Shown here: positions 2,432 through 14,513 of the stretch, piece after piece
Position numbering within the stretch: position 1 is the stretch's first letter
Layout of the letters: every line of letters starts with the position of its first letter
Assembly (NCBI GenBank): GCA_904063045.1
Contig: CAJFCJ010000004.1
Span: 55,578 to 119,577, forward strand
DNA: 64,000 nucleotides
Reading direction: 5' to 3'
DNA from: Dimorphilus gyrociliatus
Taxonomy: Eukaryota; Animalia; Annelida
Made by a program: the position numbers and the translations under genes
Notes under the pieces: generated by a model
Seen by the model: the letters and a program-made list of their open reading frames with translations, nothing else
What the model was told of the DNA's origin: nothing
The model's database searches: none

Positions 2432-3296
2432 TTAAGGCATTTCTAAATAGCCAGGATTAGCGACTATTTCATCATAGCGTCCTTCATTACCATCTCTACG
2501 ACTCATACGAGGCTGTGCTGGATTTCCCCTGTTTCCTTCTTCATTATTGTAGTAAGGAGTGTATGGAGGAGCTTGACCTTTCACTGGGGAACGACTTCTT
2601 CCTCGATCACCTCCAAGTTTAGGATATAAACCGGGTGGTACTTGATTTGATCCTTGTAGGAAATTTGGAGTATTAAATTGCATTCCGCGTCTTTGTTGTG
2701 GGCGTTCCTCTCCACTGTTCATTTTAAATATTATTATACTTGTGACGAAAGAAAATATCGTAGAAATAATAGCCAGGCCAAAAGAATAACCAAATCGTTC
2801 CAAAACTGGATTGTTAAACATATCTTCGTCTGAAACTTTAGCTACAAACACTATCCAAGTTGTACCGGTAAGAAGGCAAGCCAAAATTACAAAGCTTAAA
2901 AGGAATTTCTTACATTTACAACTTTCTACACACTTACAAACCATAGCTAGAGCTAATAATTGTGAAAGTAGCAGAAAAACTAATGACAAAGAAATTCCAA
3001 CCTGACAAAATCTGTAGAATGCTATAGGAAAGAGATTAAAGTATTTTAGATAAATATACTCTAAGTATTACATAAAATAGTTACTAACGATATGTGTCTA
3101 AAAAAACTCCGTCAATGCTTCTGACATCAGTTCCTTTCTCAGATTTAAATAGACCATACATTGTGTCCCCCTGATGGTACCAATTTCTTGTTGCAGCAGA
3201 GACAATATGAATAATCGTCGTTGAAGGCAGCAAAATGAAGCAAACCCACTTTAAAATCTTAGACGAAGAAGACACATTAGAGATAACTTTTTCCAT
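2432..3296 (-). CDS. Claudin/PMP22-like tetraspan protein 2 (exons 3296-3089, 3021-2432; ~265 aa)
   Basis: MEKVIS...ILLPSTTIIHIVSAATRNWY..YGLFK. Phase-1 intron gttagt(3088)...ctatag(3022). TM2-4 include FGYSFGLAIIST; P/G/R/Y-rich tail ending NPGYLEMP. Confidence 0.8.
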
Positions 3297-3575
3297 TTTC
3301 TCCCAGATTAGAGCAAATATGTGTATTGACTTGAAAATGAAACTGTTGCCTCTCCCAACTTCTAACACTCACAACCTATGCTACACCCTTTTCAAGAATA
3401 GTATTTCACCTTAGGCCAAGATAAATAACTACAAATATATATATATTTATATATTAGTATATGCCTTGTATTGAGAGGCCACTGTCAAATTTAACTATTC
3501 AAAATAGTTCAAGTGACAATTTTTTGTTGCTAGTTTTTAATACTACTATTATATTTGTATATTAATTAAATTATC

Positions 3576-3900: not shown

Positions 3901-4625
3901 CTATGACTGACCAATTAAGTAATCACCCTTTAAGTGTAGATAAGGTGGAAGAACTTGAAAAGAACACGACTTTTCCTTTTCGGACTGTGAAATATGCTTT
4001 AAGAGTTCTTGTCTCACTTCGTTTCTTTTTATCTTATAAGACGTTTTGAGGAATGCAAAACTAAGACCGAATAGACACAATGATAAAACGGATGATAATA
4101 CAGCAAGAAAGAACGAATACGAAAGCTTTCCTTGATAAAACTCATTAGAATTATCATAATCTGCTTTCTTTACTAAATATATTATCCATGCAGAAAAATT
4201 GAATAGTACAGAGATTCCTCTTCCTATAATAATAATATAGTTTATCAATTGACCAGAAAGTTTCTTAACAAAGAGAGCTGCTATCTCAATTGCCAATGAA
4301 AGAGTAAGCAAAGAGATGGTAATACACATGAAGACTTGAACAAGCGTCAACCAAGCTAAAACAAATATAAAGGTTTATTAAGACTATATCATAAGAAATC
4401 ATTACTCTCAGTATTAAATGTGCCAATATCTTCATTTCCATGGCATGTCCCAAATAATCCTATACGCTTTTTTATCGGTTCTTCTGTTAAATCTCTCGTA
4501 TCTATACCAATTTGAACAAACCATTCACAGGTCAATAACGCAACTAAGATGGCCACTATGCATACCATTAACAAACATAATAACAAACATTTAGATTGAA
4601 CAATAATCCTTATGCATTCTCCCAT
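3901..4625 (-). CDS. Claudin/PMP22-like tetraspan protein 3 (exons 4625-4406, 4355-3901; ~224 aa)
   Basis: TM1 then EWF...IGLFGTC; 50-nt phase-1 intron before xWLTLVQV; LSYSFFLAVLSS at TM4; codon phases add up. Confidence 0.8.
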
Positions 4626-5787
4626 AATCAAAGTTTTTATCTGAAATTTTGTAGAAGAATTAATATTAAAGAACTAGACGAAATATTTTAATACATATGG
4701 AAATTTCCTGTTCGATTAATTTAATATTAAATTAGTCAATAGAAATCTATTCTATTTTAGCCAAATAAAATGAAAACGGATGCATTGAAGCGGAATATCA
4801 GCTATAATATTTCACGTATTTAGAAATACTTAATTAAATCTTCATATATTACCTTAGATTACTCTGCTTTCGCCATAGAGTGATAGACAAATGAAAATAG
4901 ATAACTTTCTTTCGTTTCTGTTAATACCGTATATTCGTGGTTAACCTTGTACTTCCAATAACATCCGGTTATTGGTAAATCAATAGAACAATTCTACTAT
5001 AAATCGTTTTCAAAATATTTTACCTTAACTTTCGCTTAGCTTGGTATATTTAAATCCTGGATTATTCATTATAGATTTCTCTTTGTAAGAAGAGATAGAT
5101 AGATAGAGAGAGAGAGAAATACAGGAAACGAATTTCTCAGAAATTAAAGAAGTGACTCAGAAAAGATTTTTTTCTATATCTACACAACTGATAAGATAGA
5201 AATATTGTATAATGATAACAATAGAAAAAATCCTATTTAATTGGCAAATTAATCAATATTTTTAAGAAATTAATAAAAATAAATTTCCTCCAGGCATGGA
5301 ATAAATATATTCAAAGAAATAGGTTGAACACTACTGTATTATAGATTTTATATTACAGATCTATTAATAGTGATATATTTACTTTTATTATAGAAAGAGA
5401 CGAAATTGTTATTAATTATAAATAAATCACAATATATAGAGAGTATAGGCTTTTGTTAAAATTGATATTATAACTAATATATCTATCTACAGCATGTACT
5501 TGAAAATATATTGTCCATTAAGTATACACTTAATTGAACATAATATTTATTTAACTTTATAAAAACATAATCTACTTAACTTCGTTACGTTTCTCTTAGG
5601 TGTGTAATTACATTTAGTTTATATTACTATAAACGTCAAGTCTGATTTCAGTTAATGACTATTAAAAACTTATAAAGCACAGTATGAACATTGTTCGGAA
5701 GAGCATAAAATATAGATTAACTATTCTCTACTATAGAAATTAAAGTTAACGGTTAGTTTGTTAGTTTAATGGTTTAATATTTCATTA

Positions 5788-6377
5788 TTAATTTTTTATT
5801 ATGTTAACAATAGACTTTAATTCAAGTAAATTTGTTAAATAATGAGAATTGTTTGATTCGCTATCAGTGTTTTCTGGTGTTTTTTGAAGAAGTTGCTGAT
5901 TTGATCTATTGTCGCTGGTTGTTGAATTCCGATTTGACCGATTATTTTGAAATGGATGATTTGGATGGCTTAGAGAACATCTGTGATGATGTTTTGTATT
6001 TTGCTGATTTGACATCTTTGATGGTGGTGTCAAGAATAACGGCTGAATAAGAAGGACGAATGATAAGGCGGACGATATCGTTGCCATTATAAAGGATAAA
6101 GATAGTCTTCCTTTATGCGTAATATGAAATACATTTTTCACTTTTAAAATAAATACAATCCAACTGATAGTAGTAAGTAAACCAGATAGTAAGATAAGGA
6201 CTGTTATGGCAATTTTTTTAGTAGGATTCTTCCTTAGCCTCGTTACGACAGACAGGATGGACAGTATCTCCGTTGCTACAAGAATGAATAAGCTAATTAT
6301 CATTCCCACTCGAACGAATATTAGCCAATCTGTAGGGAAAATAGGAATAAGGCACAAATTTGCTAAAAATATATAGT

Positions 6378-6424
<47 letters not shown>

Positions 6425-7280
6425 CCCACTGTCTGGCTAGTAATCTATTTTAAACACAAACCTTCCTTAAATAAATCTGTTCCTGGAAAATCTACTGATT
6501 TATCTCCGTATACGGCGAACAATCCTGAATGAGAATCATTAACTTCAAACCAATAGCTGGTTGCCATAGAAATAACATGAATGAATATCGTAAATGGTAA
6601 TAGAGGATAAATTAGTATCTTCATATCCCAGGTTAAATTCTCAAATTTTATTACAACTGATTTCAAAACGCTATTAGACAATAAGAAAAAGTTTGTTCTA
6701 GTATTTTCTCCTTCCGGTTTTGTTAAGATAATTAAAGACATTATAAAAGAAAAAACCGACGAGATTATGGCTGATATGAGCGAATATGAAACCTTAATTG
6801 TTTCTTTGCGTGGTTTAGCTAGCATAATTATGATAGTCAACCAACTTAGACTAGTTAATAACCATATTAGGAGCAGAGTAGACCCTATCAAATACTTTTC
6901 AATTATATAACTTTTCCGCCCGGTAGACATTGCAAAAACGATAAAAACACCTAATATACTAAGTAGAGCAGGACTAATGATCATTGTGACTCTGACTAAT
7001 TTAAGCCATTCTGTAAGTTAATATAAAAGAATCTTGTTAATATATGCTTGCGTTAATATCCATCAAAGTAACAGTAAAACTTACCGTATTCATCAATTAA
7101 TTTTCCATTACAATTTTTTAAGTAACATATTTCAAATAATCCAAAGGATATTTTATAATCAATTACAAACCAGTAGTTTGTAGATAAAGCGACAAAATTA
7201 CACAATAAAGTTAGAATTAATAGTATAAAAGTCAGTTTTAGTCTTAATGATGATTTTAGGAAATTTCTGATACATATCAT
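5788..7280 (-). CDS. Tandem double claudin-like protein A, predicted 8 TM (exons 7280-7085, 7010-6462, 6329-5788; ~428 aa)
   Basis: Exon 1: TM1 plus YW..FGLFEICYLKNC. Exon 2: TM2-4 of domain 1, linker, then a second TM1 plus YW..SGLF. Exon 3: DWLIFVRVGM and TM2-4 of domain 2. Both introns are phase 1 GT-AG; total 1287 nt. Confidence 0.8.
6381..6420. repeat. (CT)n microsatellite inside intron 2 of 8-TM gene A
   Basis: 20 CT units; explains the ERERER stretch in the ORF track. Confidence 0.95.
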
Positions 7281-8556
7281 AACTATCCTATTCGGTATAT
7301 AATCAATATTTAAGCAGTAATAATCTATTTTGAAGAGTGAAGCATATAAAAAAGTGTATCTTCCTCTATCTTCTCTTTCTCTCTCCCTCTCTCTCTCTCT
7401 TTTTTCTCTTCCTTCCTTATTATTCTTTTAGTTGGTTATGGTAAATTAATAAGAGGTATATTGAGAAAAGGCAGAATAATAACAGTTGTCAAAGTCTGTT
7501 TCTTTTGAAATATAATCCCTCTTCAATATTTTCACATTGATTTTCTCAAGTTTTTTCTATATAATTCTCATATAAAACTACTTACATAATATTAATAAAT
7601 TGATACATATAAATTAATATATACATATATATATATATATATACTATTTAAATTTAATATCTAATAATTTGATTAATTAGAGCATATTAGAAAATCAATT
7701 TTTTCAAATTTTTGTTGTATATATACTTGTATAATAATTTATTATTACCAATAAATAACAAAGAAATAGTGTATAACGCACAGTATAATCTTATCATTTA
7801 AAGATGATAGGTCAATTTTAGTAAAGATGGAAAAGTACTCTAGTATTTAACTAAACATACTTTTATTAGAAATTACACATATAAATATTAATATAACCTA
7901 TTTAGATAAATGATTGAATATTCACTTTTCTTTATGATTTTGCACTTGAAATTGAGAATAAAAAGTGAATTTTTTCTACTACAATAAAACAATATTCAAA
8001 ATTAAAGTTTCGCCTTTATTCATATTTTATTATTTATTCAATAAAAATTATAGATATAAAGTAGTTTTGTTTGAATTATCCTCTTTTTTTGTTTTAATAC
8101 AACTGTTCATCTTCTCAATTGATTTTTCGTTTTACATAAGAAAGATAAAGAGAAAAATTAACGTTCTTCCCTTTTTTTTACACATTTAATTTTAATATTT
8201 TTGTTAAACAATTAAAAAGAAAAAATAAATAAAAGAAATGGAATTTTCTTTCTTGAATAATTTGAGATTTTTTTTCTCTTTTCTTCGTTTTTTCTTTTCT
8301 TCTTCTTCTTCTCCTTCTCCTCCTCCTTCTTCTTCTTCATCCTCTTCTTCGTCTTTTATACTTTTGTTATCACTTATGGCATTTTTTGCGATTGATTTCG
8401 CCTAAGAGAGAAAAAGTTTCCACTTCTTTTTTAAAAGCCTATCAGTATTTTTTTTTCTTTTTTTTAATTAACTAACCTAAAAAGATCTCCTCTAAGTATA
8501 TATATATATATTAGTTATATACATATATATATATATATATGCAGTTATTTACAATT

Positions 8557-8967
8557 TTAGTTTATATATGATGAAATCTTTAATAAACGAGAATTTAAAT
8601 GCTCAGCTTTAAGGCTAATTTCAGTTTCGCGCCAAATTTCTTGTAGGCTTTTCCCGAAAATCGTTTGAAAATTTTCGTAAATAACATCAGATTGGTTCTG
8701 CTCTTTCAATTCTTCATGTAATTCTTCGATATAGTCTGGAATTCGATGCCATTTACCTAACTTTGGTCTTTTATCAAATGATATAAGAGTTGCTGAATAA
8801 GTTGCGAAAGGAGAAACGTAATCAATCGGCTTTTTTACTCCAGAATCAATCGGATCTATTCTATGCGCCTTCGTTATTAAAATAAATGATAATATAGATG
8901 AAATTAAATAAAAACTAATTGAACATTTTTTAAAGCTTGTTAAACTGATTAATCCTTTAGCTGCCAT
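8557..8967 (-). CDS. Orphan protein with N-terminal hydrophobic segment (putative signal peptide), ~136 aa; may have further exons
   Basis: The 159-codon open frame is long for such AT-rich DNA. From ATG 8967: MAAKGLISLTSFKKCSISFYLISSILSFILITKA, then a hydrophilic, protein-like helical segment. No family recognised. Confidence 0.45.
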   Translation of the reverse strand: MAAKGLISLTSFKKCSISFYLISSILSFILITKAHRIDPIDSGVKKPIDYVSPFATYSATLISFDKRPKLGKWHRIPDYIEELHEELKEQNQSDVIYENFQTIFGKSLQEIWRETEISLKAEHLNSRLLKISSYIN

Positions 8968-9643
8968 CGTAGGGAATCCTTTTATCGAATGTAAAACTTG
9001 AAAGCGTTTAGCGCGATTTATAGAAGGAAATTTCACATGACCAAACTTAAGAGATAAGAAGATAAGAACTCTTGTCGTATATATATATATATATTAAAAG
9101 TTATTAAACAGTTCAGATAGCTAATTAAACTTGGCGTAGAACGCAGTGTATATGTTTACTTTAATATAACTCTTTAATTAGGTTTATCATTAAAAGAACG
9201 ATTTATTCGTTTATTTATTCGTTTTTCAAACCTATTAGTTTTATCTTTAGACTAAGTTTTAGACAATAAGCTGTATCCGGTAAAAAACCGGTTTAAGTTG
9301 ACCCCCTTAGACGGATGTCTGAAAATGATTTTTTTTATGTCAGGTCAAGGCAATAATTCTTATTAACTCCTTAACATTTCAAATAAAAAAAAGCTCCTTT
9401 GTCATCATTTTAGCATTTATTGTCAAGTAAAAAATCATAAACTAAATATATATATATATATATATATATAGAATATCTATATCTTTGTATATTCTTATAT
9501 AAGTTGCTATGTTAACTCTTATCGCTATTAATGATATTCAAGAATATTCTTGAACTATAAAAATTCCATTTTTTTAATAAAACTTGTCTGAACGAAAAGA
9601 AGTTTGTTAACTTCTTTGAAAAGAATTCATATGGAAAACTTTT

Positions 9644-10869
9644 CTAAGAATTTCCATTGCTATTATCCACAATTGGTTTATAATTGTTCCGACCGGTAAT
9701 AATAGATAATAAAAGGATAACAAATGGAAAAATTGATGATATTATAGATAAAATAATAGAAAATGATAAATTTCCTTTTTCTAATATTTTAAAGTCGGAT
9801 TCTCCCATTTTAATAAATACAATCCAACTTGTAGTTGTTAATAATCCAATTAAAAACAATGCAATTCTTATGCATGCCCTTCTCCTTGTATTGAGTCCTA
9901 CTTGAAGCAATATTAAAAGTATGGCAGCTATTTCAACGATGATTAATAGGACAAGACTACTTGTCATTCCGATCCTAACAAATTTTAACCAATCTGTAAT
10001 AGATAATAGTTTTTATCTATAATCTATATTATATATATATATTTATTTATTTATAGATTTCACGTAATTGATTCTCTTACCTCGTTCGAAGAGATCAATT
10101 CCAGGATAATTGTTTGATTTCTCTCCAACACTAATAAACAAACCTGAATGTGAAGAACCAATTTCGTACCAGAATTTTGTTGACAATGAAATTGCATGTA
10201 TAAATATCATAAATGGTCCAATTGGATAAATCAGTAATTTCATATCTAATAATTCATTTTCAAAATAGTCTCTATTCAAATTTTCACTTTGTCTCGTATG
10301 ACTTTCAGTGTTTTCTATCAGGCTTACTAAAAAACAATTAGCTAGTGACAGTAATGAGGAAACTATTGCCGTGTAGAAGAAAATGGAGATATAGATGGTA
10401 TGTTGATTATTTGCAAAGGTTGGATATATAGTAAATAAGATTAATATCCAACTATAGCCAGTTAACATTGAAATTAGTAGAAAGGTAGTAGAAATGAAGA
10501 ATTTCATATTTGGATGAAGTTTATAAGTTTTATACGTTAAACTAATAAGCCATATTGTATTCATCGTTAGGAAGTAGAAACTTGAGGACAATCCGGTGTC
10601 AATTGAATCTAATCTACCTATATAAAGATTTATTTAATAGAGATAAATACAGTATTTTCATAAGATAACTTACCAGTTTCATTAAAGTAACACTTTCTTC
10701 CATATTTACAATACTTGAATAGTTCATTATAGATATTACGTTGACCGAACCAGCAATATATTGAAAACGAAATTAGATAAATAATAATATTTAGAGGCAA
10801 AATCCAATACTTAATCAATTTCATTCTATTATTTGCATCGAAATATTTAACGATCCACTTATGAAGCAT
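9644..10869 (-). CDS. Tandem double claudin-like protein B, predicted 8 TM (exons 10869-10674, ~10617-10081, 9993-9644; ~360 aa)
   Basis: Same three-exon layout as protein A. The second domain is clearly paralogous (DMKLLIYPIGPF..FWYEIGSSHSGLF..PGIDLFER|DWLKFVRIGM). Phase-1 introns; first acceptor could be 10618 or 10609. Confidence 0.8.
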
Positions 10870-11872: not shown

Positions 11873-12681
11873 ATGACTGATTTTCAGATTTCTCGATCGG
11901 TATTTCTGCTTGTTATACATATTTGCATTGCTAGTGTTGTTCATATTATATCCCTATCAACTCAAGGATGGCATAATGGCTATGAGAATGTTGGACTCTT
12001 TCCCCAGGGAAACATTCCCGGTAAGTACTTAATTAACACTCACGAAATTTTTCTAAGATACTAAATATTTCAAAAGACTGGTGGAAACTTACACAAGCAG
12101 CTATGGTTCTAGGTCTAATGTGCCTTATGATTTCGGAAGTTTGCGCCATTATCTCTTTATTGAGTAAACAAAAATACTACCCAAACGATAAAAGAATAAT
12201 TGCCGGGTTTTTACTTCTTGGATTTATATTTACGACGGGAAGTTGGATAACTTTTGCGGTTGAGATGAGAAAAGAGGACAATAGATTTCTGTTGGGGCTT
12301 GCGTCCGATTCAGAGGAAAGTTTCAGCTACTCCTTCGGTCTGGCTGTCGTATCGTCAATTCTCTCCTTCCTCTTAATAATACAAACATGGATAGTAAAAA
12401 AGGGAGAGTATGACGATCCCTATCCAACCGATGCTCAAATAGGGGAGAGTATCTATGACAATAATTCACTTGTGTTACGTCCTGCAAACGGGAAAGATGG
12501 TGGAGTTAATAGTACAAAAATCCCGTCAACTGCTAAAGACAACTATTCAGCAAACCCTGTTTATAGAGACAGTTTCAATCCGGAAAATGTTGACAATTCA
12601 CGCTGGAGTGTTTCGGAATTATATAATTTTCATGGTGTTCCTAAGAGTATGTCAAATCAAGAATTTAATTTTGTCCTTTAA
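11873..12681 (+). CDS. Claudin/PMP22-like tetraspan protein 6 (exons 11873-12020, 12077-12681; ~250 aa)
   Basis: HIISLSTQGW..VGLF; 56-nt phase-1 intron gtaagt...aaag before DWWKLTQAAM; FSYSFGLAVVSS; tail with NPVY ending FNFVL. Confidence 0.85.
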
Positions 12682-12899: not shown

Positions 12900-13504
12900 A
12901 TGCAAAAGCTCGGATTAAATTTCCTTCAACTAATTACGTTTCTTCCGGCTTTATTCATACAAACATTCTCGTTATACTCCGAAGCATGGGTTATAACGTA
13001 TACTCAGAATGGTAGCATTGAAACTGAAGAGGGGCCGCTCTATGTAAAAGTTGGAGATGAAAACGTACAACAAAATATATTTGATGGTAAATACCATATT
13101 GGTTTTGTATTTATTATACATCTGATTCAAAATATCCCGTTTTAGGAACACCTTGGATGATTTTAATACGTATTTTTTTGTTAGCATCTGTCATCTTTAA
13201 TTCACTCATTATTCTAAGTTTACCATTAATTATTATGATCAGCCGAAGATTTGCACAATTAAAATTTATCCAATATGGAATATTTGCTGCAAACCTCCTA
13301 TTAAATATATTTTCGCTTTCACTATTTGCAATACTTTACGAGATTAATGCAAATGCAATTCAACTAACTAAAAGATATTACTTACCTTGGTTGTCGGTTG
13401 TTCTACAATTGTTACATTTAATTGCAACAATCGCTGAAGAAAATTGCAGTATCTTTGAAAAACAGAAGAAGCTTGGTCACTCAGTTGGTGAAATCGATCT
13501 ATAA
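12900..13504 (+). CDS. Divergent claudin/PMP22-like tetraspan protein 7 (exons 12900-13086, 13146-13504; ~181 aa)
   Basis: TM1-W-loop exon, 59-nt phase-1 intron, PWMILIRIF at TM2 start, then three more hydrophobic segments. GLF motif degenerate (GPLY). Confidence 0.65.
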
Positions 13505-13775: not shown

Positions 13776-14513
13776 ATGGCTGACTGTGAGGAAAAGACCA
13801 CAATTTCTAAATTACAACAAGTGTTTCGATATATTATATTACCTGTTAATCTTCTGGTTCATTGCATTTCTACCTTTACACCTGGATGGTTTTATTTTTC
13901 AAATTCAAGTTATGGATTATTCTCAACTTGCTATTCTAAACTTTGCAGTTCAACTGATTACATAAAAAACCATGGTTAGTACAAACAGGATTATTGCCTC
14001 TATTTTTTTTCGTGTGTTATAAAATAATTTAATTAATAATTTTTCACTTCAGATTGGTTTTCAATTGTTCAAGCGATGATGACCTCTAGTGGAATACTTT
14101 TGATTATTGCTACAGTTGCAGTTATAGCTTCATTTCTAATCAAATATAAGCGACCCGAATCAACTATATTATTCTTATTATTTTGTATGGGAGTATCGTG
14201 TATTTTCAGCTTTATCGCATGGATTGTGTTTTCCGTTAATTCGAATGGATACTTTTTTATTGGAGAATTGAATCATATATCATATTCACACTCTTTGGGT
14301 ATCGTTTCGTCATTCCTGCAATATATTGGATTTCTTATAAATTCTTACTCATTCATAATGATATCCCCGAAAAGAGCATTACCACCTCCAGAAGACAATA
14401 ATAACGAACAACAAACCAAACTTGAATTTGACAATGATCGTATACACGAACAGCCATATAAAAGTAAACTAAACACTGCAACCTATCGTAGTAATTGCGT
14501 AACTTTTGCTTAG
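13776..14513 (+). CDS. Claudin/PMP22-like tetraspan protein 8 (exons 13776-13974, 14053-14513; ~219 aa)
   Basis: GWF..YGLFSTCYSKLC signature; 78-nt phase-1 intron before DWFSIVQAMM; ISYSHSLGIVSS at TM4. Confidence 0.85.

Follow-up and report, generated by a model that had tools for sequence, protein, structure and literature searches.

Two paralogous annelid genes with head-to-tail claudin-like modules in a single reading frame

Gene structure and module homology

The window analysed here is a 64,000-nucleotide stretch of contig CAJFCJ010000004.1 of the annelid Dimorphilus gyrociliatus. Two genes on its reverse strand, A (positions 5788-7280, 428 codons) and B (9644-10869, 360 codons), are composed of three exons each. 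Their four introns have GT..AG borders, interrupt the frame in phase 1, and are 74 and 132 nt (A) and 56 and 87 nt (B) long. Exon 1 of A (7085-7280) contains the start codon, the first transmembrane span (TM1) of module 1, and the beginning of that module's outer loop 1 (W..GLF..C-x4-C), and ends in phase 1. It is separated by intron 1 (7011-7084), which has a homologous intron in contig L001 of a sister species, from the middle exon (6462-7010; 549 nt, phase 1/1). The middle exon encodes TM2-4 of module 1, a linker, and TM1 with the W..GLF loop of module 2. Intron 2 (6330-6461) includes a (GA)n repeat, and exon 3 (5788-6329) encodes TM2-4 of module 2 and a conserved Ser/Asn-rich tail of about 75 residues, and ends with the stop codon. 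Gene B has the same layout. Its exon 1 (10674-10869), at 196 nt equal in length to that of A, encodes TM1 and the loop (W..LF..C-x5-C) of module 1, and is followed by intron 1 (10618-10673), which is conserved in sister contig L004. The middle exon (10081-10617; 537 nt, phase 1/1) encodes a degenerate TM2 and TM3-4 of module 1, the linker, and TM1 with the loop of module 2. Intron 2 (9994-10080) includes a (TA)n repeat, and exon 3 (9644-9993) completes module 2 with TM2-4 and closes with a short tail and the stop codon. The two genes are diverged paralogues with 41% identity and a common architecture.

The middle exons are open throughout their 182 (A) and 178 (B) in-frame codons, and their other two frames contain 14-23 stops each (23 and 16 in A). 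A sequence-only reading of the locus had proposed that the exon runs from TM2-4 of one claudin-like domain, through a linker, into TM1 and the W..GLF loop of a second without a stop, and this is seen in both genes. The proposal that A and B are head-to-tail two-module frames agrees with the open exons, the profile matches described below, and the contigs of the related species: each gene is a true two-module reading frame. A search of the 77.9-Mb genome finds such a two-module middle exon at these two loci only.

Six single-domain claudin-like genes in the window, each of two exons, provide the reference for the modules. S1 (876-1823) is on the forward strand, S2 (2432-3368) and S3 (3901-4631) are on the reverse strand, and S4 (11873-12681), S5 (12900-13504), and S6 (13776-14513) are on the forward strand; S2 corresponds to database protein P0003 and S4 to P0004. 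All six have a single phase-1 intron in the same place, directly upstream of the conserved Trp that precedes TM2. Because this position is shared by every single-domain paralogue, the family intron is retained in each module of A and B, as had been claimed. In the first module of B, the conserved Trp that opens exon 2 is missing.

The homology of the modules to the neighbouring genes is evident from profile comparisons. The first approximately 100 residues of the middle exon correspond to the TM2-4 half of a module, and the last approximately 55 to the half with TM1 and the outer loop. A profile of the middle exons of A, B, and their two orthologues was aligned by hhalign to profiles of the six single-domain paralogues, S4 included. 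Columns 1-103 match the exon 2 (TM2-4) profile of the neighbours (98.4%, E 4.5e-15), and columns 125-166 match their exon 1 profile, covering TM1 and the W..GLF loop (94.5%, E 7.5e-8). Genome-wide six-frame matches agree with this homology. Among Pfam families, S4 scores above the cut-off of Claudin_3 (42.7 bits vs 28.7) and just above that of Clc-like (25.0 bits, cut-off 24.9). A and B were searched and scanned exon by exon; in this form, the best scores are 20.0 bits for A exon 1 against PMP22_Claudin (cut-off 26.7) and 19.7 bits for B exon 3 against Claudin_3 (cut-off 28.7). The sub-threshold match of each exon piece falls on the corresponding part of the claudin profiles. The AlphaFold2 model of S4 has four long helices (mean pLDDT 54.7), and the top PDB matches of this model in Foldseek include MP20, TARP gamma-2 and gamma-8, Cav gamma-1, and GSG1L, all with E of at least 0.08; none is significant.

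The two modules of each gene are of different types. Module 1 has the loop signature W..(G/E)L(F/L)-x2-C-x4/5-C in A, B, and both orthologues, and its GLF-x2-C-x4/5-C cysteine pair resembles that of S1 and S6. Module 2 has the Trp and a conserved SHSGLF..PG.DLF motif in a loop without cysteines, and resembles S2 and S4. The loop of S5 is likewise devoid of cysteines, and the Cys-less module 2 marks a subtype of the local family, not a lack of membership in it.

Hydropathy was calculated according to Kyte and Doolittle in a 19-residue window. Gene A has eight clear hydrophobic spans in a 1+3+1+3 pattern with peaks of 1.9-2.5. The eight spans that had been assigned to both proteins are therefore clear in A, whereas B, with the same pattern, has seven clear spans (peaks 1.8-3.1) and a weak TM2 of module 1 with a peak of 1.11. 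The corresponding span of the sister species' B peaks at 2.16. A ninth span in the linker of A was considered and rejected: its peak is 1.05, the linker of B is hydrophilic, and the sister species' A has no peak of 1.0 or more at this place. The AlphaFold2 model of the middle exon of A alone is of low confidence (pLDDT 59.6), and only helix positions were taken from it; it predicts a short helix in the linker.

Conservation and selection in a sister species

DNA contigs of a related species contain both A and B, and their exon structure, splice sites, and intron phases agree with those of the window. Independent contigs from three sequencing runs include the read-through middle exon (A in L001 and L002, B in L004 and L005), and there are exact protein matches between the runs. 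The gene order of the sister species, with an FGGY kinase, single-domain genes, B, a small open reading frame, and A, is that of the window. The start codon and the exon 1 donor of A are conserved in L001, and sister-species contigs end at the place matching intron 2 of B. The orthologue of B was found by the exhaustive profile search alone; word-index protein searches with the middle exon and exon 1 of B gave no match. The exhaustive search returned no relative outside the lineage, which reflects the divergence of the family and does not speak against tandem claudins in other lineages. The claudin-like family to which A and B belong is lineage-specific and fast-evolving.

Strong purifying selection acts on the whole of gene A, linker included, with dN/dS of about 0.1. 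Its exon 2 is 72% identical to that of the sister species, and dS is saturated. The dN/dS values are 0.108 for the middle exon in comparison with L001, 0.098 for the tail in exon 3, and 0.08-0.20 in every part with an estimable dS, including the linker. Gene B evolves faster, with pN/pS of about 0.5, yet its frame is open. Exon 1 of B is 35% identical between the species (pN 0.40 vs pS 0.79), the middle exon is 49% identical to L004 (pN/pS 0.56, p 2e-6), and exon 3 is 61% identical to L001:71-463 (pN 0.24 vs pS 0.53); pN is lower than pS in all three exons, with p from 1e-5 to 1e-6. The ongoing divergence of B is concentrated in module 1, and A is tightly constrained. In neutral simulations, the middle exon stays free of stops in 0.03% of the trials for A and in none of 20000 for B. 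The extreme C-termini, ..IIKN in A and ..NGNS in B, are not conserved between the species.

The linker and the origin of the fusion

The linker of A (6619-6717, reverse strand) has about 33 codons, is predicted to be cytoplasmic, and includes the motif FENLTWDMK, with its Met codon at 6622-6624. The linker of B (10238-10312, reverse strand) has about 25 codons, is hydrophilic, and includes FENELLDMK, with the Met codon at 10241-10243. The shared FEN..DMK motif is found as it had been described: in A it reads FENLTWDMKILIYP, and its counterpart in B is FENELLDMKLLIYP. The linker of A is conserved in the sister species (dN/dS 0.084, Fisher p 4e-6, no indel). The linker of B shows no constraint at the amino-acid level: its conservation is limited to FE(N/K)E..D(M/I)K, pN/pS is approximately 1.2 over 22 codons, and its length differs between the species by three codons in frame.

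The Met of the linker had been placed where the single-domain paralogues start. It lies near these starts, but in the alignment most of them precede it by approximately 5-15 residues, and the sister species' B has an Ile at its position. It is plausible that the Met derives from the ancestral start codon of a downstream gene, with the position approximate and the residue itself not conserved. An internal polyadenylation signal was rejected as a candidate feature of the linker: the linkers of A and of the sister species' A each contain a single AATAAA, at non-homologous places, and B has none.

In a tree of the TM2-4 halves, the first modules of the genes cluster together (79/76), as do the second modules (78/90), and the second modules also cluster in a tree of the TM1 halves (70/87). 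The supports are moderate (70-90), the TM1 half of the first module of B has no settled placement, and an alternative grouping of the two modules of A is not rejected (p-AU 0.10). The claim that the fusion is older than the A/B duplication is borne out by the presence of both orthologues in the second species, the module-wise groups in the trees, and the linker motif common to A and B. As judged from these comparisons, the fusion predates both the duplication and the species split. Most likely, two adjacent genes of the local tandem array that had already diverged from each other became joined by the loss of the upstream stop codon together with the intergenic DNA. The fused gene would then have duplicated to give A and B before the sister species separated.

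The encoded product and its alternatives

A and B are probably functional paralogous genes, each encoding one polypeptide with two different tetraspan modules of the claudin superfamily in tandem. Among annotated proteins, the exhaustive profile search recovered those of S2 and S4 and no product of A or B, and the public annotation probably lacks both genes. A search for recorded contigs encoding the annotated S4 protein gave no hit. The missing annotation may reflect low or restricted expression. Literature searches found nothing on claudins in this species, and neither the literature nor the protein library yielded eight-span or tandem claudins.

It is very improbable that A, B, or both are unexpressed pseudogene relics of a fusion in a fast-evolving tandem array. 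This would fit the protein library without an annotated product of either gene, the search that listed one run of unknown kind and no RNA sequencing run with at least 5% of the words of the window, and the degenerate TM2, lost Trp, and unconstrained linker of B. However, both species have kept the frames, the start codons, and all eight splice sites intact although synonymous divergence is saturated, pN is significantly lower than pS across all exons of A and B, and the frames almost never survive the neutral simulations. The chance is smaller still that two neighbouring four-span genes were joined artificially by collapse, mis-assembly, or an error that erased a stop. The region is AT-rich and has microsatellites in its introns, but contigs from three separate runs of a second species show the read-through exon in both A and B. 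Moreover, the window contains two diverged paralogues with the same architecture, and 73% of its words occur in run X1, though this run may be the source sample. The sister contigs, the selection, and the frames that stayed open against neutral expectation make both of these explanations very unlikely.

A less remote, though still unlikely, explanation is that the loci yield mainly four-span proteins, with the eight-span form minor or absent. This could result from skipping of the middle exon, or from an internal promoter combined with the linker Met, which would give module 2 alone. The middle exons, at 549 and 537 nt, are multiples of three in phase 1/1, and skipping would therefore join exons 1 and 3 in frame. 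In both genes the junction would be a split GAT codon (Asp) followed by Trp, restoring the D-W junction of the family, and the product would be a single hybrid claudin-like domain with the front of module 1 and the back of module 2. The four-span explanation is also consistent with the Met ahead of TM1 of module 2 in A, the sister species' A, and B, and with the better conservation of module 2 than module 1 in B. However, a TM2-4 half and linker that are usually skipped or not translated would neither show dN/dS of approximately 0.1 in A nor stay free of stops in four sequences. The sister species' B has Ile in place of the Met and no later Met in the first half of module 2. Since no stop follows module 1, transcripts with its back half must continue into module 2. 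The genome paper of this miniature annelid reports no operons or trans-splicing (PMC7854359), which would speak against a trans-spliced mRNA for module 2 alone.

For the tandem polypeptide, the arrangement of the spans suggests how two modules could share one chain. A linker of 25-35 residues would connect the module with the Cys pair to the Cys-less module. The linker should be cytoplasmic because an even number of membrane spans precedes it, and this position would allow module 2 to enter the membrane in its native orientation, resulting in eight spans with both ends inside. The product would keep two different claudin-like units together in cis, within one membrane and at a fixed 1:1 ratio. 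Such a pair might be a unit from which lateral or trans contacts of epithelial junctions are built; alternatively, it might be a membrane-organising or auxiliary subunit. It is tentatively possible that A and B are natural single-chain claudin tandems acting as obligate 1:1 cis-heterodimers, in which skipping of the middle exon might switch between an eight-span tandem and a four-span hybrid.

The closest known system is the single-domain tetraspans of the PMP22/EMP/MP20/claudin group (Claudin_3 PF06653, Clc-like PF07062, Claudin_2 PF13903), to which S1-S6 belong. The modules of A and B share with them the four spans, the Trp ending TM1, the GLF in outer loop 1, the family phase-1 intron, the SW motif in TM3, the Ser-rich TM4, and, in module 1, the Cys pair. 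The difference is that two modules are joined by a linker in one frame. Unlike classical tight-junction claudins, A and B do not have the C-terminal -YV PDZ-binding motif, and their loop cysteines are spaced by x4-5, shorter than the x8-10 of classical claudins.

In K2P and two-pore channels, like subunits that formed a non-covalent pair have become a fixed pair through gene fusion, and the two halves can then diverge asymmetrically. By analogy, the asymmetric divergence of modules 1 and 2 in A and B resembles that of these tandem-subunit proteins, which are pore-forming channels of known function. Side-by-side pairing of claudin-family proteins in one membrane is debated and is usually probed with engineered constructs. 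The fungal potassium channel TOK1 also has eight spans, with an N-terminal four-span fold similar to calcium-channel gamma subunits, TARPs, and claudins covalently joined to a second four-span unit (PMC13323377). The partner in TOK1 is a two-pore K+ channel domain instead of a second claudin-like module, and TOK1 is unrelated to A and B in sequence.

If the proposed reading is correct, A and B represent a natural fusion of unlike claudin-like modules that is maintained by selection, and thus a ready-made fixed cis-pair. The linker length and the module order would limit which helices can face each other, and the diverging copies would show the fate of each half once the pairing is fixed. A tandem gene array could in this way create new membrane architecture by read-through fusion.

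Gene structure and predicted topology of A and B

A tandem array of claudin-like genes occupies the window's first 14.5 kb, and in it A and B lie between six ordinary single-domain paralogues. The paralogues S1 (876-1823, + strand), S2 (2432-3368, -), S3 (3901-4631, -), S4 (11873-12681, +), S5 (12900-13504, +), and S6 (13776-14513, +) each have two exons and one phase-1 intron, positioned immediately ahead of the conserved Trp preceding TM2. The models of S2 and S4 are identical to the spliced library proteins P0003 and P0004, and S4 exceeds the Pfam cut-off for Claudin_3 (42.7 bits, cut-off 28.7) and passes that for Clc-like. PPxY motifs, the usual docking sites of Nedd4-type WW-domain ubiquitin ligases, are present in the cytoplasmic tails of S1 (PPPY..PPPY..PPSY; 1700-1823, +) and S2 (APPYTPYY; 2432-2600, -), and absent from A and B.

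Genes A (exons 7280-7085, 7010-6462, and 6329-5788) and B (exons 10869-10674, 10617-10081, and 9993-9644) are encoded on the minus strand, with GT..AG splice sites and two phase-1 introns each, of 56-132 nt. The middle exon is a single open frame of 182 in-frame codons in A and 178 in B, and the other two frames contain 14-23 stops. A middle-exon profile built from A, B, and both orthologues from a sister species was compared with the single-domain neighbours. Its columns 1-103 match the exon-2 profile of the neighbours, covering TM2-4 (98.4% probability, E 4.5e-15), and columns 125-166 match their exon-1 profile, covering TM1 and the W..GLF loop (94.5%, E 7.5e-8). Because the two halves match these profiles, the anatomy proposed in the sequence-only reading, in which TM2-4 of module 1 continues through a linker into TM1 and the loop of module 2 within one stop-free exon, is correct. 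The linker motif FEN..DMK(I/L)LIYP, which it described as common to A and B, is indeed present in both.

Each of the two genes is single-copy in the window's own 77.9-Mb assembly. A profile search run exhaustively over 1.84 billion representatives matched only two ORFs of the sister species and the annotated proteins S2 and S4; it returned no annotated product of A or B and no relative in other lineages. Introns and intergenic DNA of A and B contain (GA)n/(TC)n and (TA)n microsatellites (6348-6420, 7360-7400, 8490-8545, 9450-9470, and 10030-10050), and A-rich intergenic DNA lies between B and A, outside both genes (8204-8247).

Hydropathy analysis identified eight clear spans in A, and seven in B together with a weak module-1 TM2 (peak 1.11), which is normal in the B of the sister species (2.16). 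A low-confidence AF2 model of the middle exon of A contains helices at the sites of the hydropathy spans and a short linker helix. Language-model look-alikes of this exon belong to PMP22/claudin clusters, with scores of at most 0.89 that serve as a lead only. From the established topology of the family, we infer that the linker is cytoplasmic and that module 2 is inserted natively, giving an 8-pass protein.

Conservation and selection in a second species

A word search of Logan assemblies identified a 176-residue ORF with 71% identity to the middle exon of A, on contigs from runs SRR23372228, SRR23372229, and SRR23372231. The contigs retain introns and thus represent genomic DNA from a related species; the FGGY kinase exon that flanks the genes shares 82% identity between this species and the window. 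Contig L001 runs from the last exon of B through a small conserved ORF to A, complete with its three exons, and contig L004 carries the FGGY kinase, single-domain genes, and exons 1 and 2 of B. The two species agree in gene order, start codons, every splice site, and intron phase. The sister contigs end at the counterpart of intron 2 of B, beside a long T run.

Synonymous sites of A are saturated between the species (pS 0.53-0.80), with dN of 0.11-0.31. The dN/dS is about 0.2 in exon 1, 0.12 in module-1 TM2-4, 0.084 in the linker (Fisher p 4e-6), which contains no indel, and 0.094 in TM1' (the first span of module 2) and its loop. In module-2 TM2-4, pS is 0.80 and pN 0.25, and saturation places dS beyond estimation. 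The C-terminal tail of A (5788-6010, -) comprises about 75 Ser/Asn/Thr-rich residues with a dN/dS of 0.098, and its strong conservation between species suggests a binding or phosphorylation motif. The segment ..NRNSTTS..RSNQQLL.KTPENTDSESNNSH.. is kept inside it. B has a short, unconserved tail.

B evolves much faster, with identities to its orthologue of 35%, 49%, and 61% in exons 1, 2, and 3; pN is nonetheless lower than pS in every exon (p 2e-5, 2e-6, and 1e-6). Its pN (10082-10615, -, compared with L004:8355-8879) is 0.40 in exon 1, 0.33 in module-1 TM2-4, 0.25 in TM1' and loop, and 0.24 in exon 3. Exon 2 of both B orthologues starts with (R/S)(L/M)(D/N)SI(D/E)TG in place of the family's W-L-x-x-V-R. 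The linker of B is without amino-acid constraint, keeping only FE(N/K)E..D(M/I)K and differing in length by three in-frame codons. When the observed number of substitutions was placed at random, the middle exon was stop-free in 0.03% of trials for A and in 0 of 20000 for B. This outcome and the substitution constraint indicate that A and B are both preserved as coding sequence through the boundary between the modules. B is, as judged from the species comparison, a case of asymmetric divergence after duplication, with module 2 kept better than module 1.

The small ORF between B and A (8557-9036, -, probable start 8967; orthologue L001:908-1312) encodes about 136 residues with an N-terminal hydrophobic anchor and the conserved core ..IDPID..KPI.Y.SPFATYSATLI.FDKRPKLGKWHRIPD.IEEL.. 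It is single-copy in the window's own genome and 59% identical to its orthologue (pN 0.24, pS 0.57, p 2e-8). Since it matches no Pfam family and has no Atlas look-alike, it probably represents an orphan gene for a membrane protein.

Origin of the two-module genes

Trees were calculated separately for TM2-4 halves and TM1-plus-loop halves, without joining exons; the TM2-4 tree omits S5, which has a very long branch. The TM2-4 tree places module 1 of A, of the sister's A, and of B in one group (79/76) and the second modules in another (78/90), where A and B each lie beside their orthologue. The TM1 tree also unites the second modules (70/87) and leaves the position of B's first module unresolved; a constraint that unites the first modules is not rejected (p-AU 0.17). 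Internal duplication could also have produced the two modules of A, and forcing them together costs 4.7 log-likelihood units with a p-AU of 0.10, which is not a formal rejection. However, the loop of module 1 has a Cys pair, as in S1 and S6, whereas that of module 2 is Cys-less, as in S2, S4, and S5. Because of this contrast, fusion of two unlike neighbours fits better than self-duplication.

The Cys contrast, the linker motif common to A and B, and the occurrence of the two genes in the sister species as well support an order of events in which fusion preceded the A/B duplication, and the duplication the species split; the last two observations bear out the earlier proposal that the fusion predates the duplication. 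The linker Met, two residues ahead of module-2 TM1 in the alignment, was described in the sequence-only reading as lying at the start site of the single-domain paralogues. It lies near that site, but most starts are about 5-15 residues upstream, so the exact position is not borne out. Exon 1 of B has a second Met at exactly the linker-Met position, and the sister's B has Ile there. The linker Met is plausible as an ancestral start codon, and a start at this position is not needed today.

Products and mode of action

Comparison of the species shows A and B to be two selected reading frames, each encoding two unlike claudin-like modules. A search of sequencing runs yielded no RNA run that contains the window. 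The main alternative is that the loci mostly yield 4-TM products, by skipping of the middle exon or by an internal start giving module 2 alone. The middle exon forms a symmetric phase-1 cassette; its omission would join exon 1 to exon 3 and restore the canonical D-W junction. Nevertheless, the strong constraint on the module-1 TM2-4 block and linker of A speaks against this alternative and argues that A, at least, yields the full two-module form.

The miniature 73.8-Mb annelid genome is reported to have median introns of 66 bp and to lack operons and trans-splicing (PMC7854359). In our literature search, no naturally occurring claudin-family tandem was described. Architecturally, the closest case that came up is fungal TOK1, in which a claudin/gamma-subunit-like 4-TM domain is joined to a two-pore K+ channel unit, giving eight TM (PMC13323377). 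The architecture and age proposed for the A/B fusion are supported, and the 8-pass protein would hold two claudin-like modules as a fixed 1:1 cis-pair.
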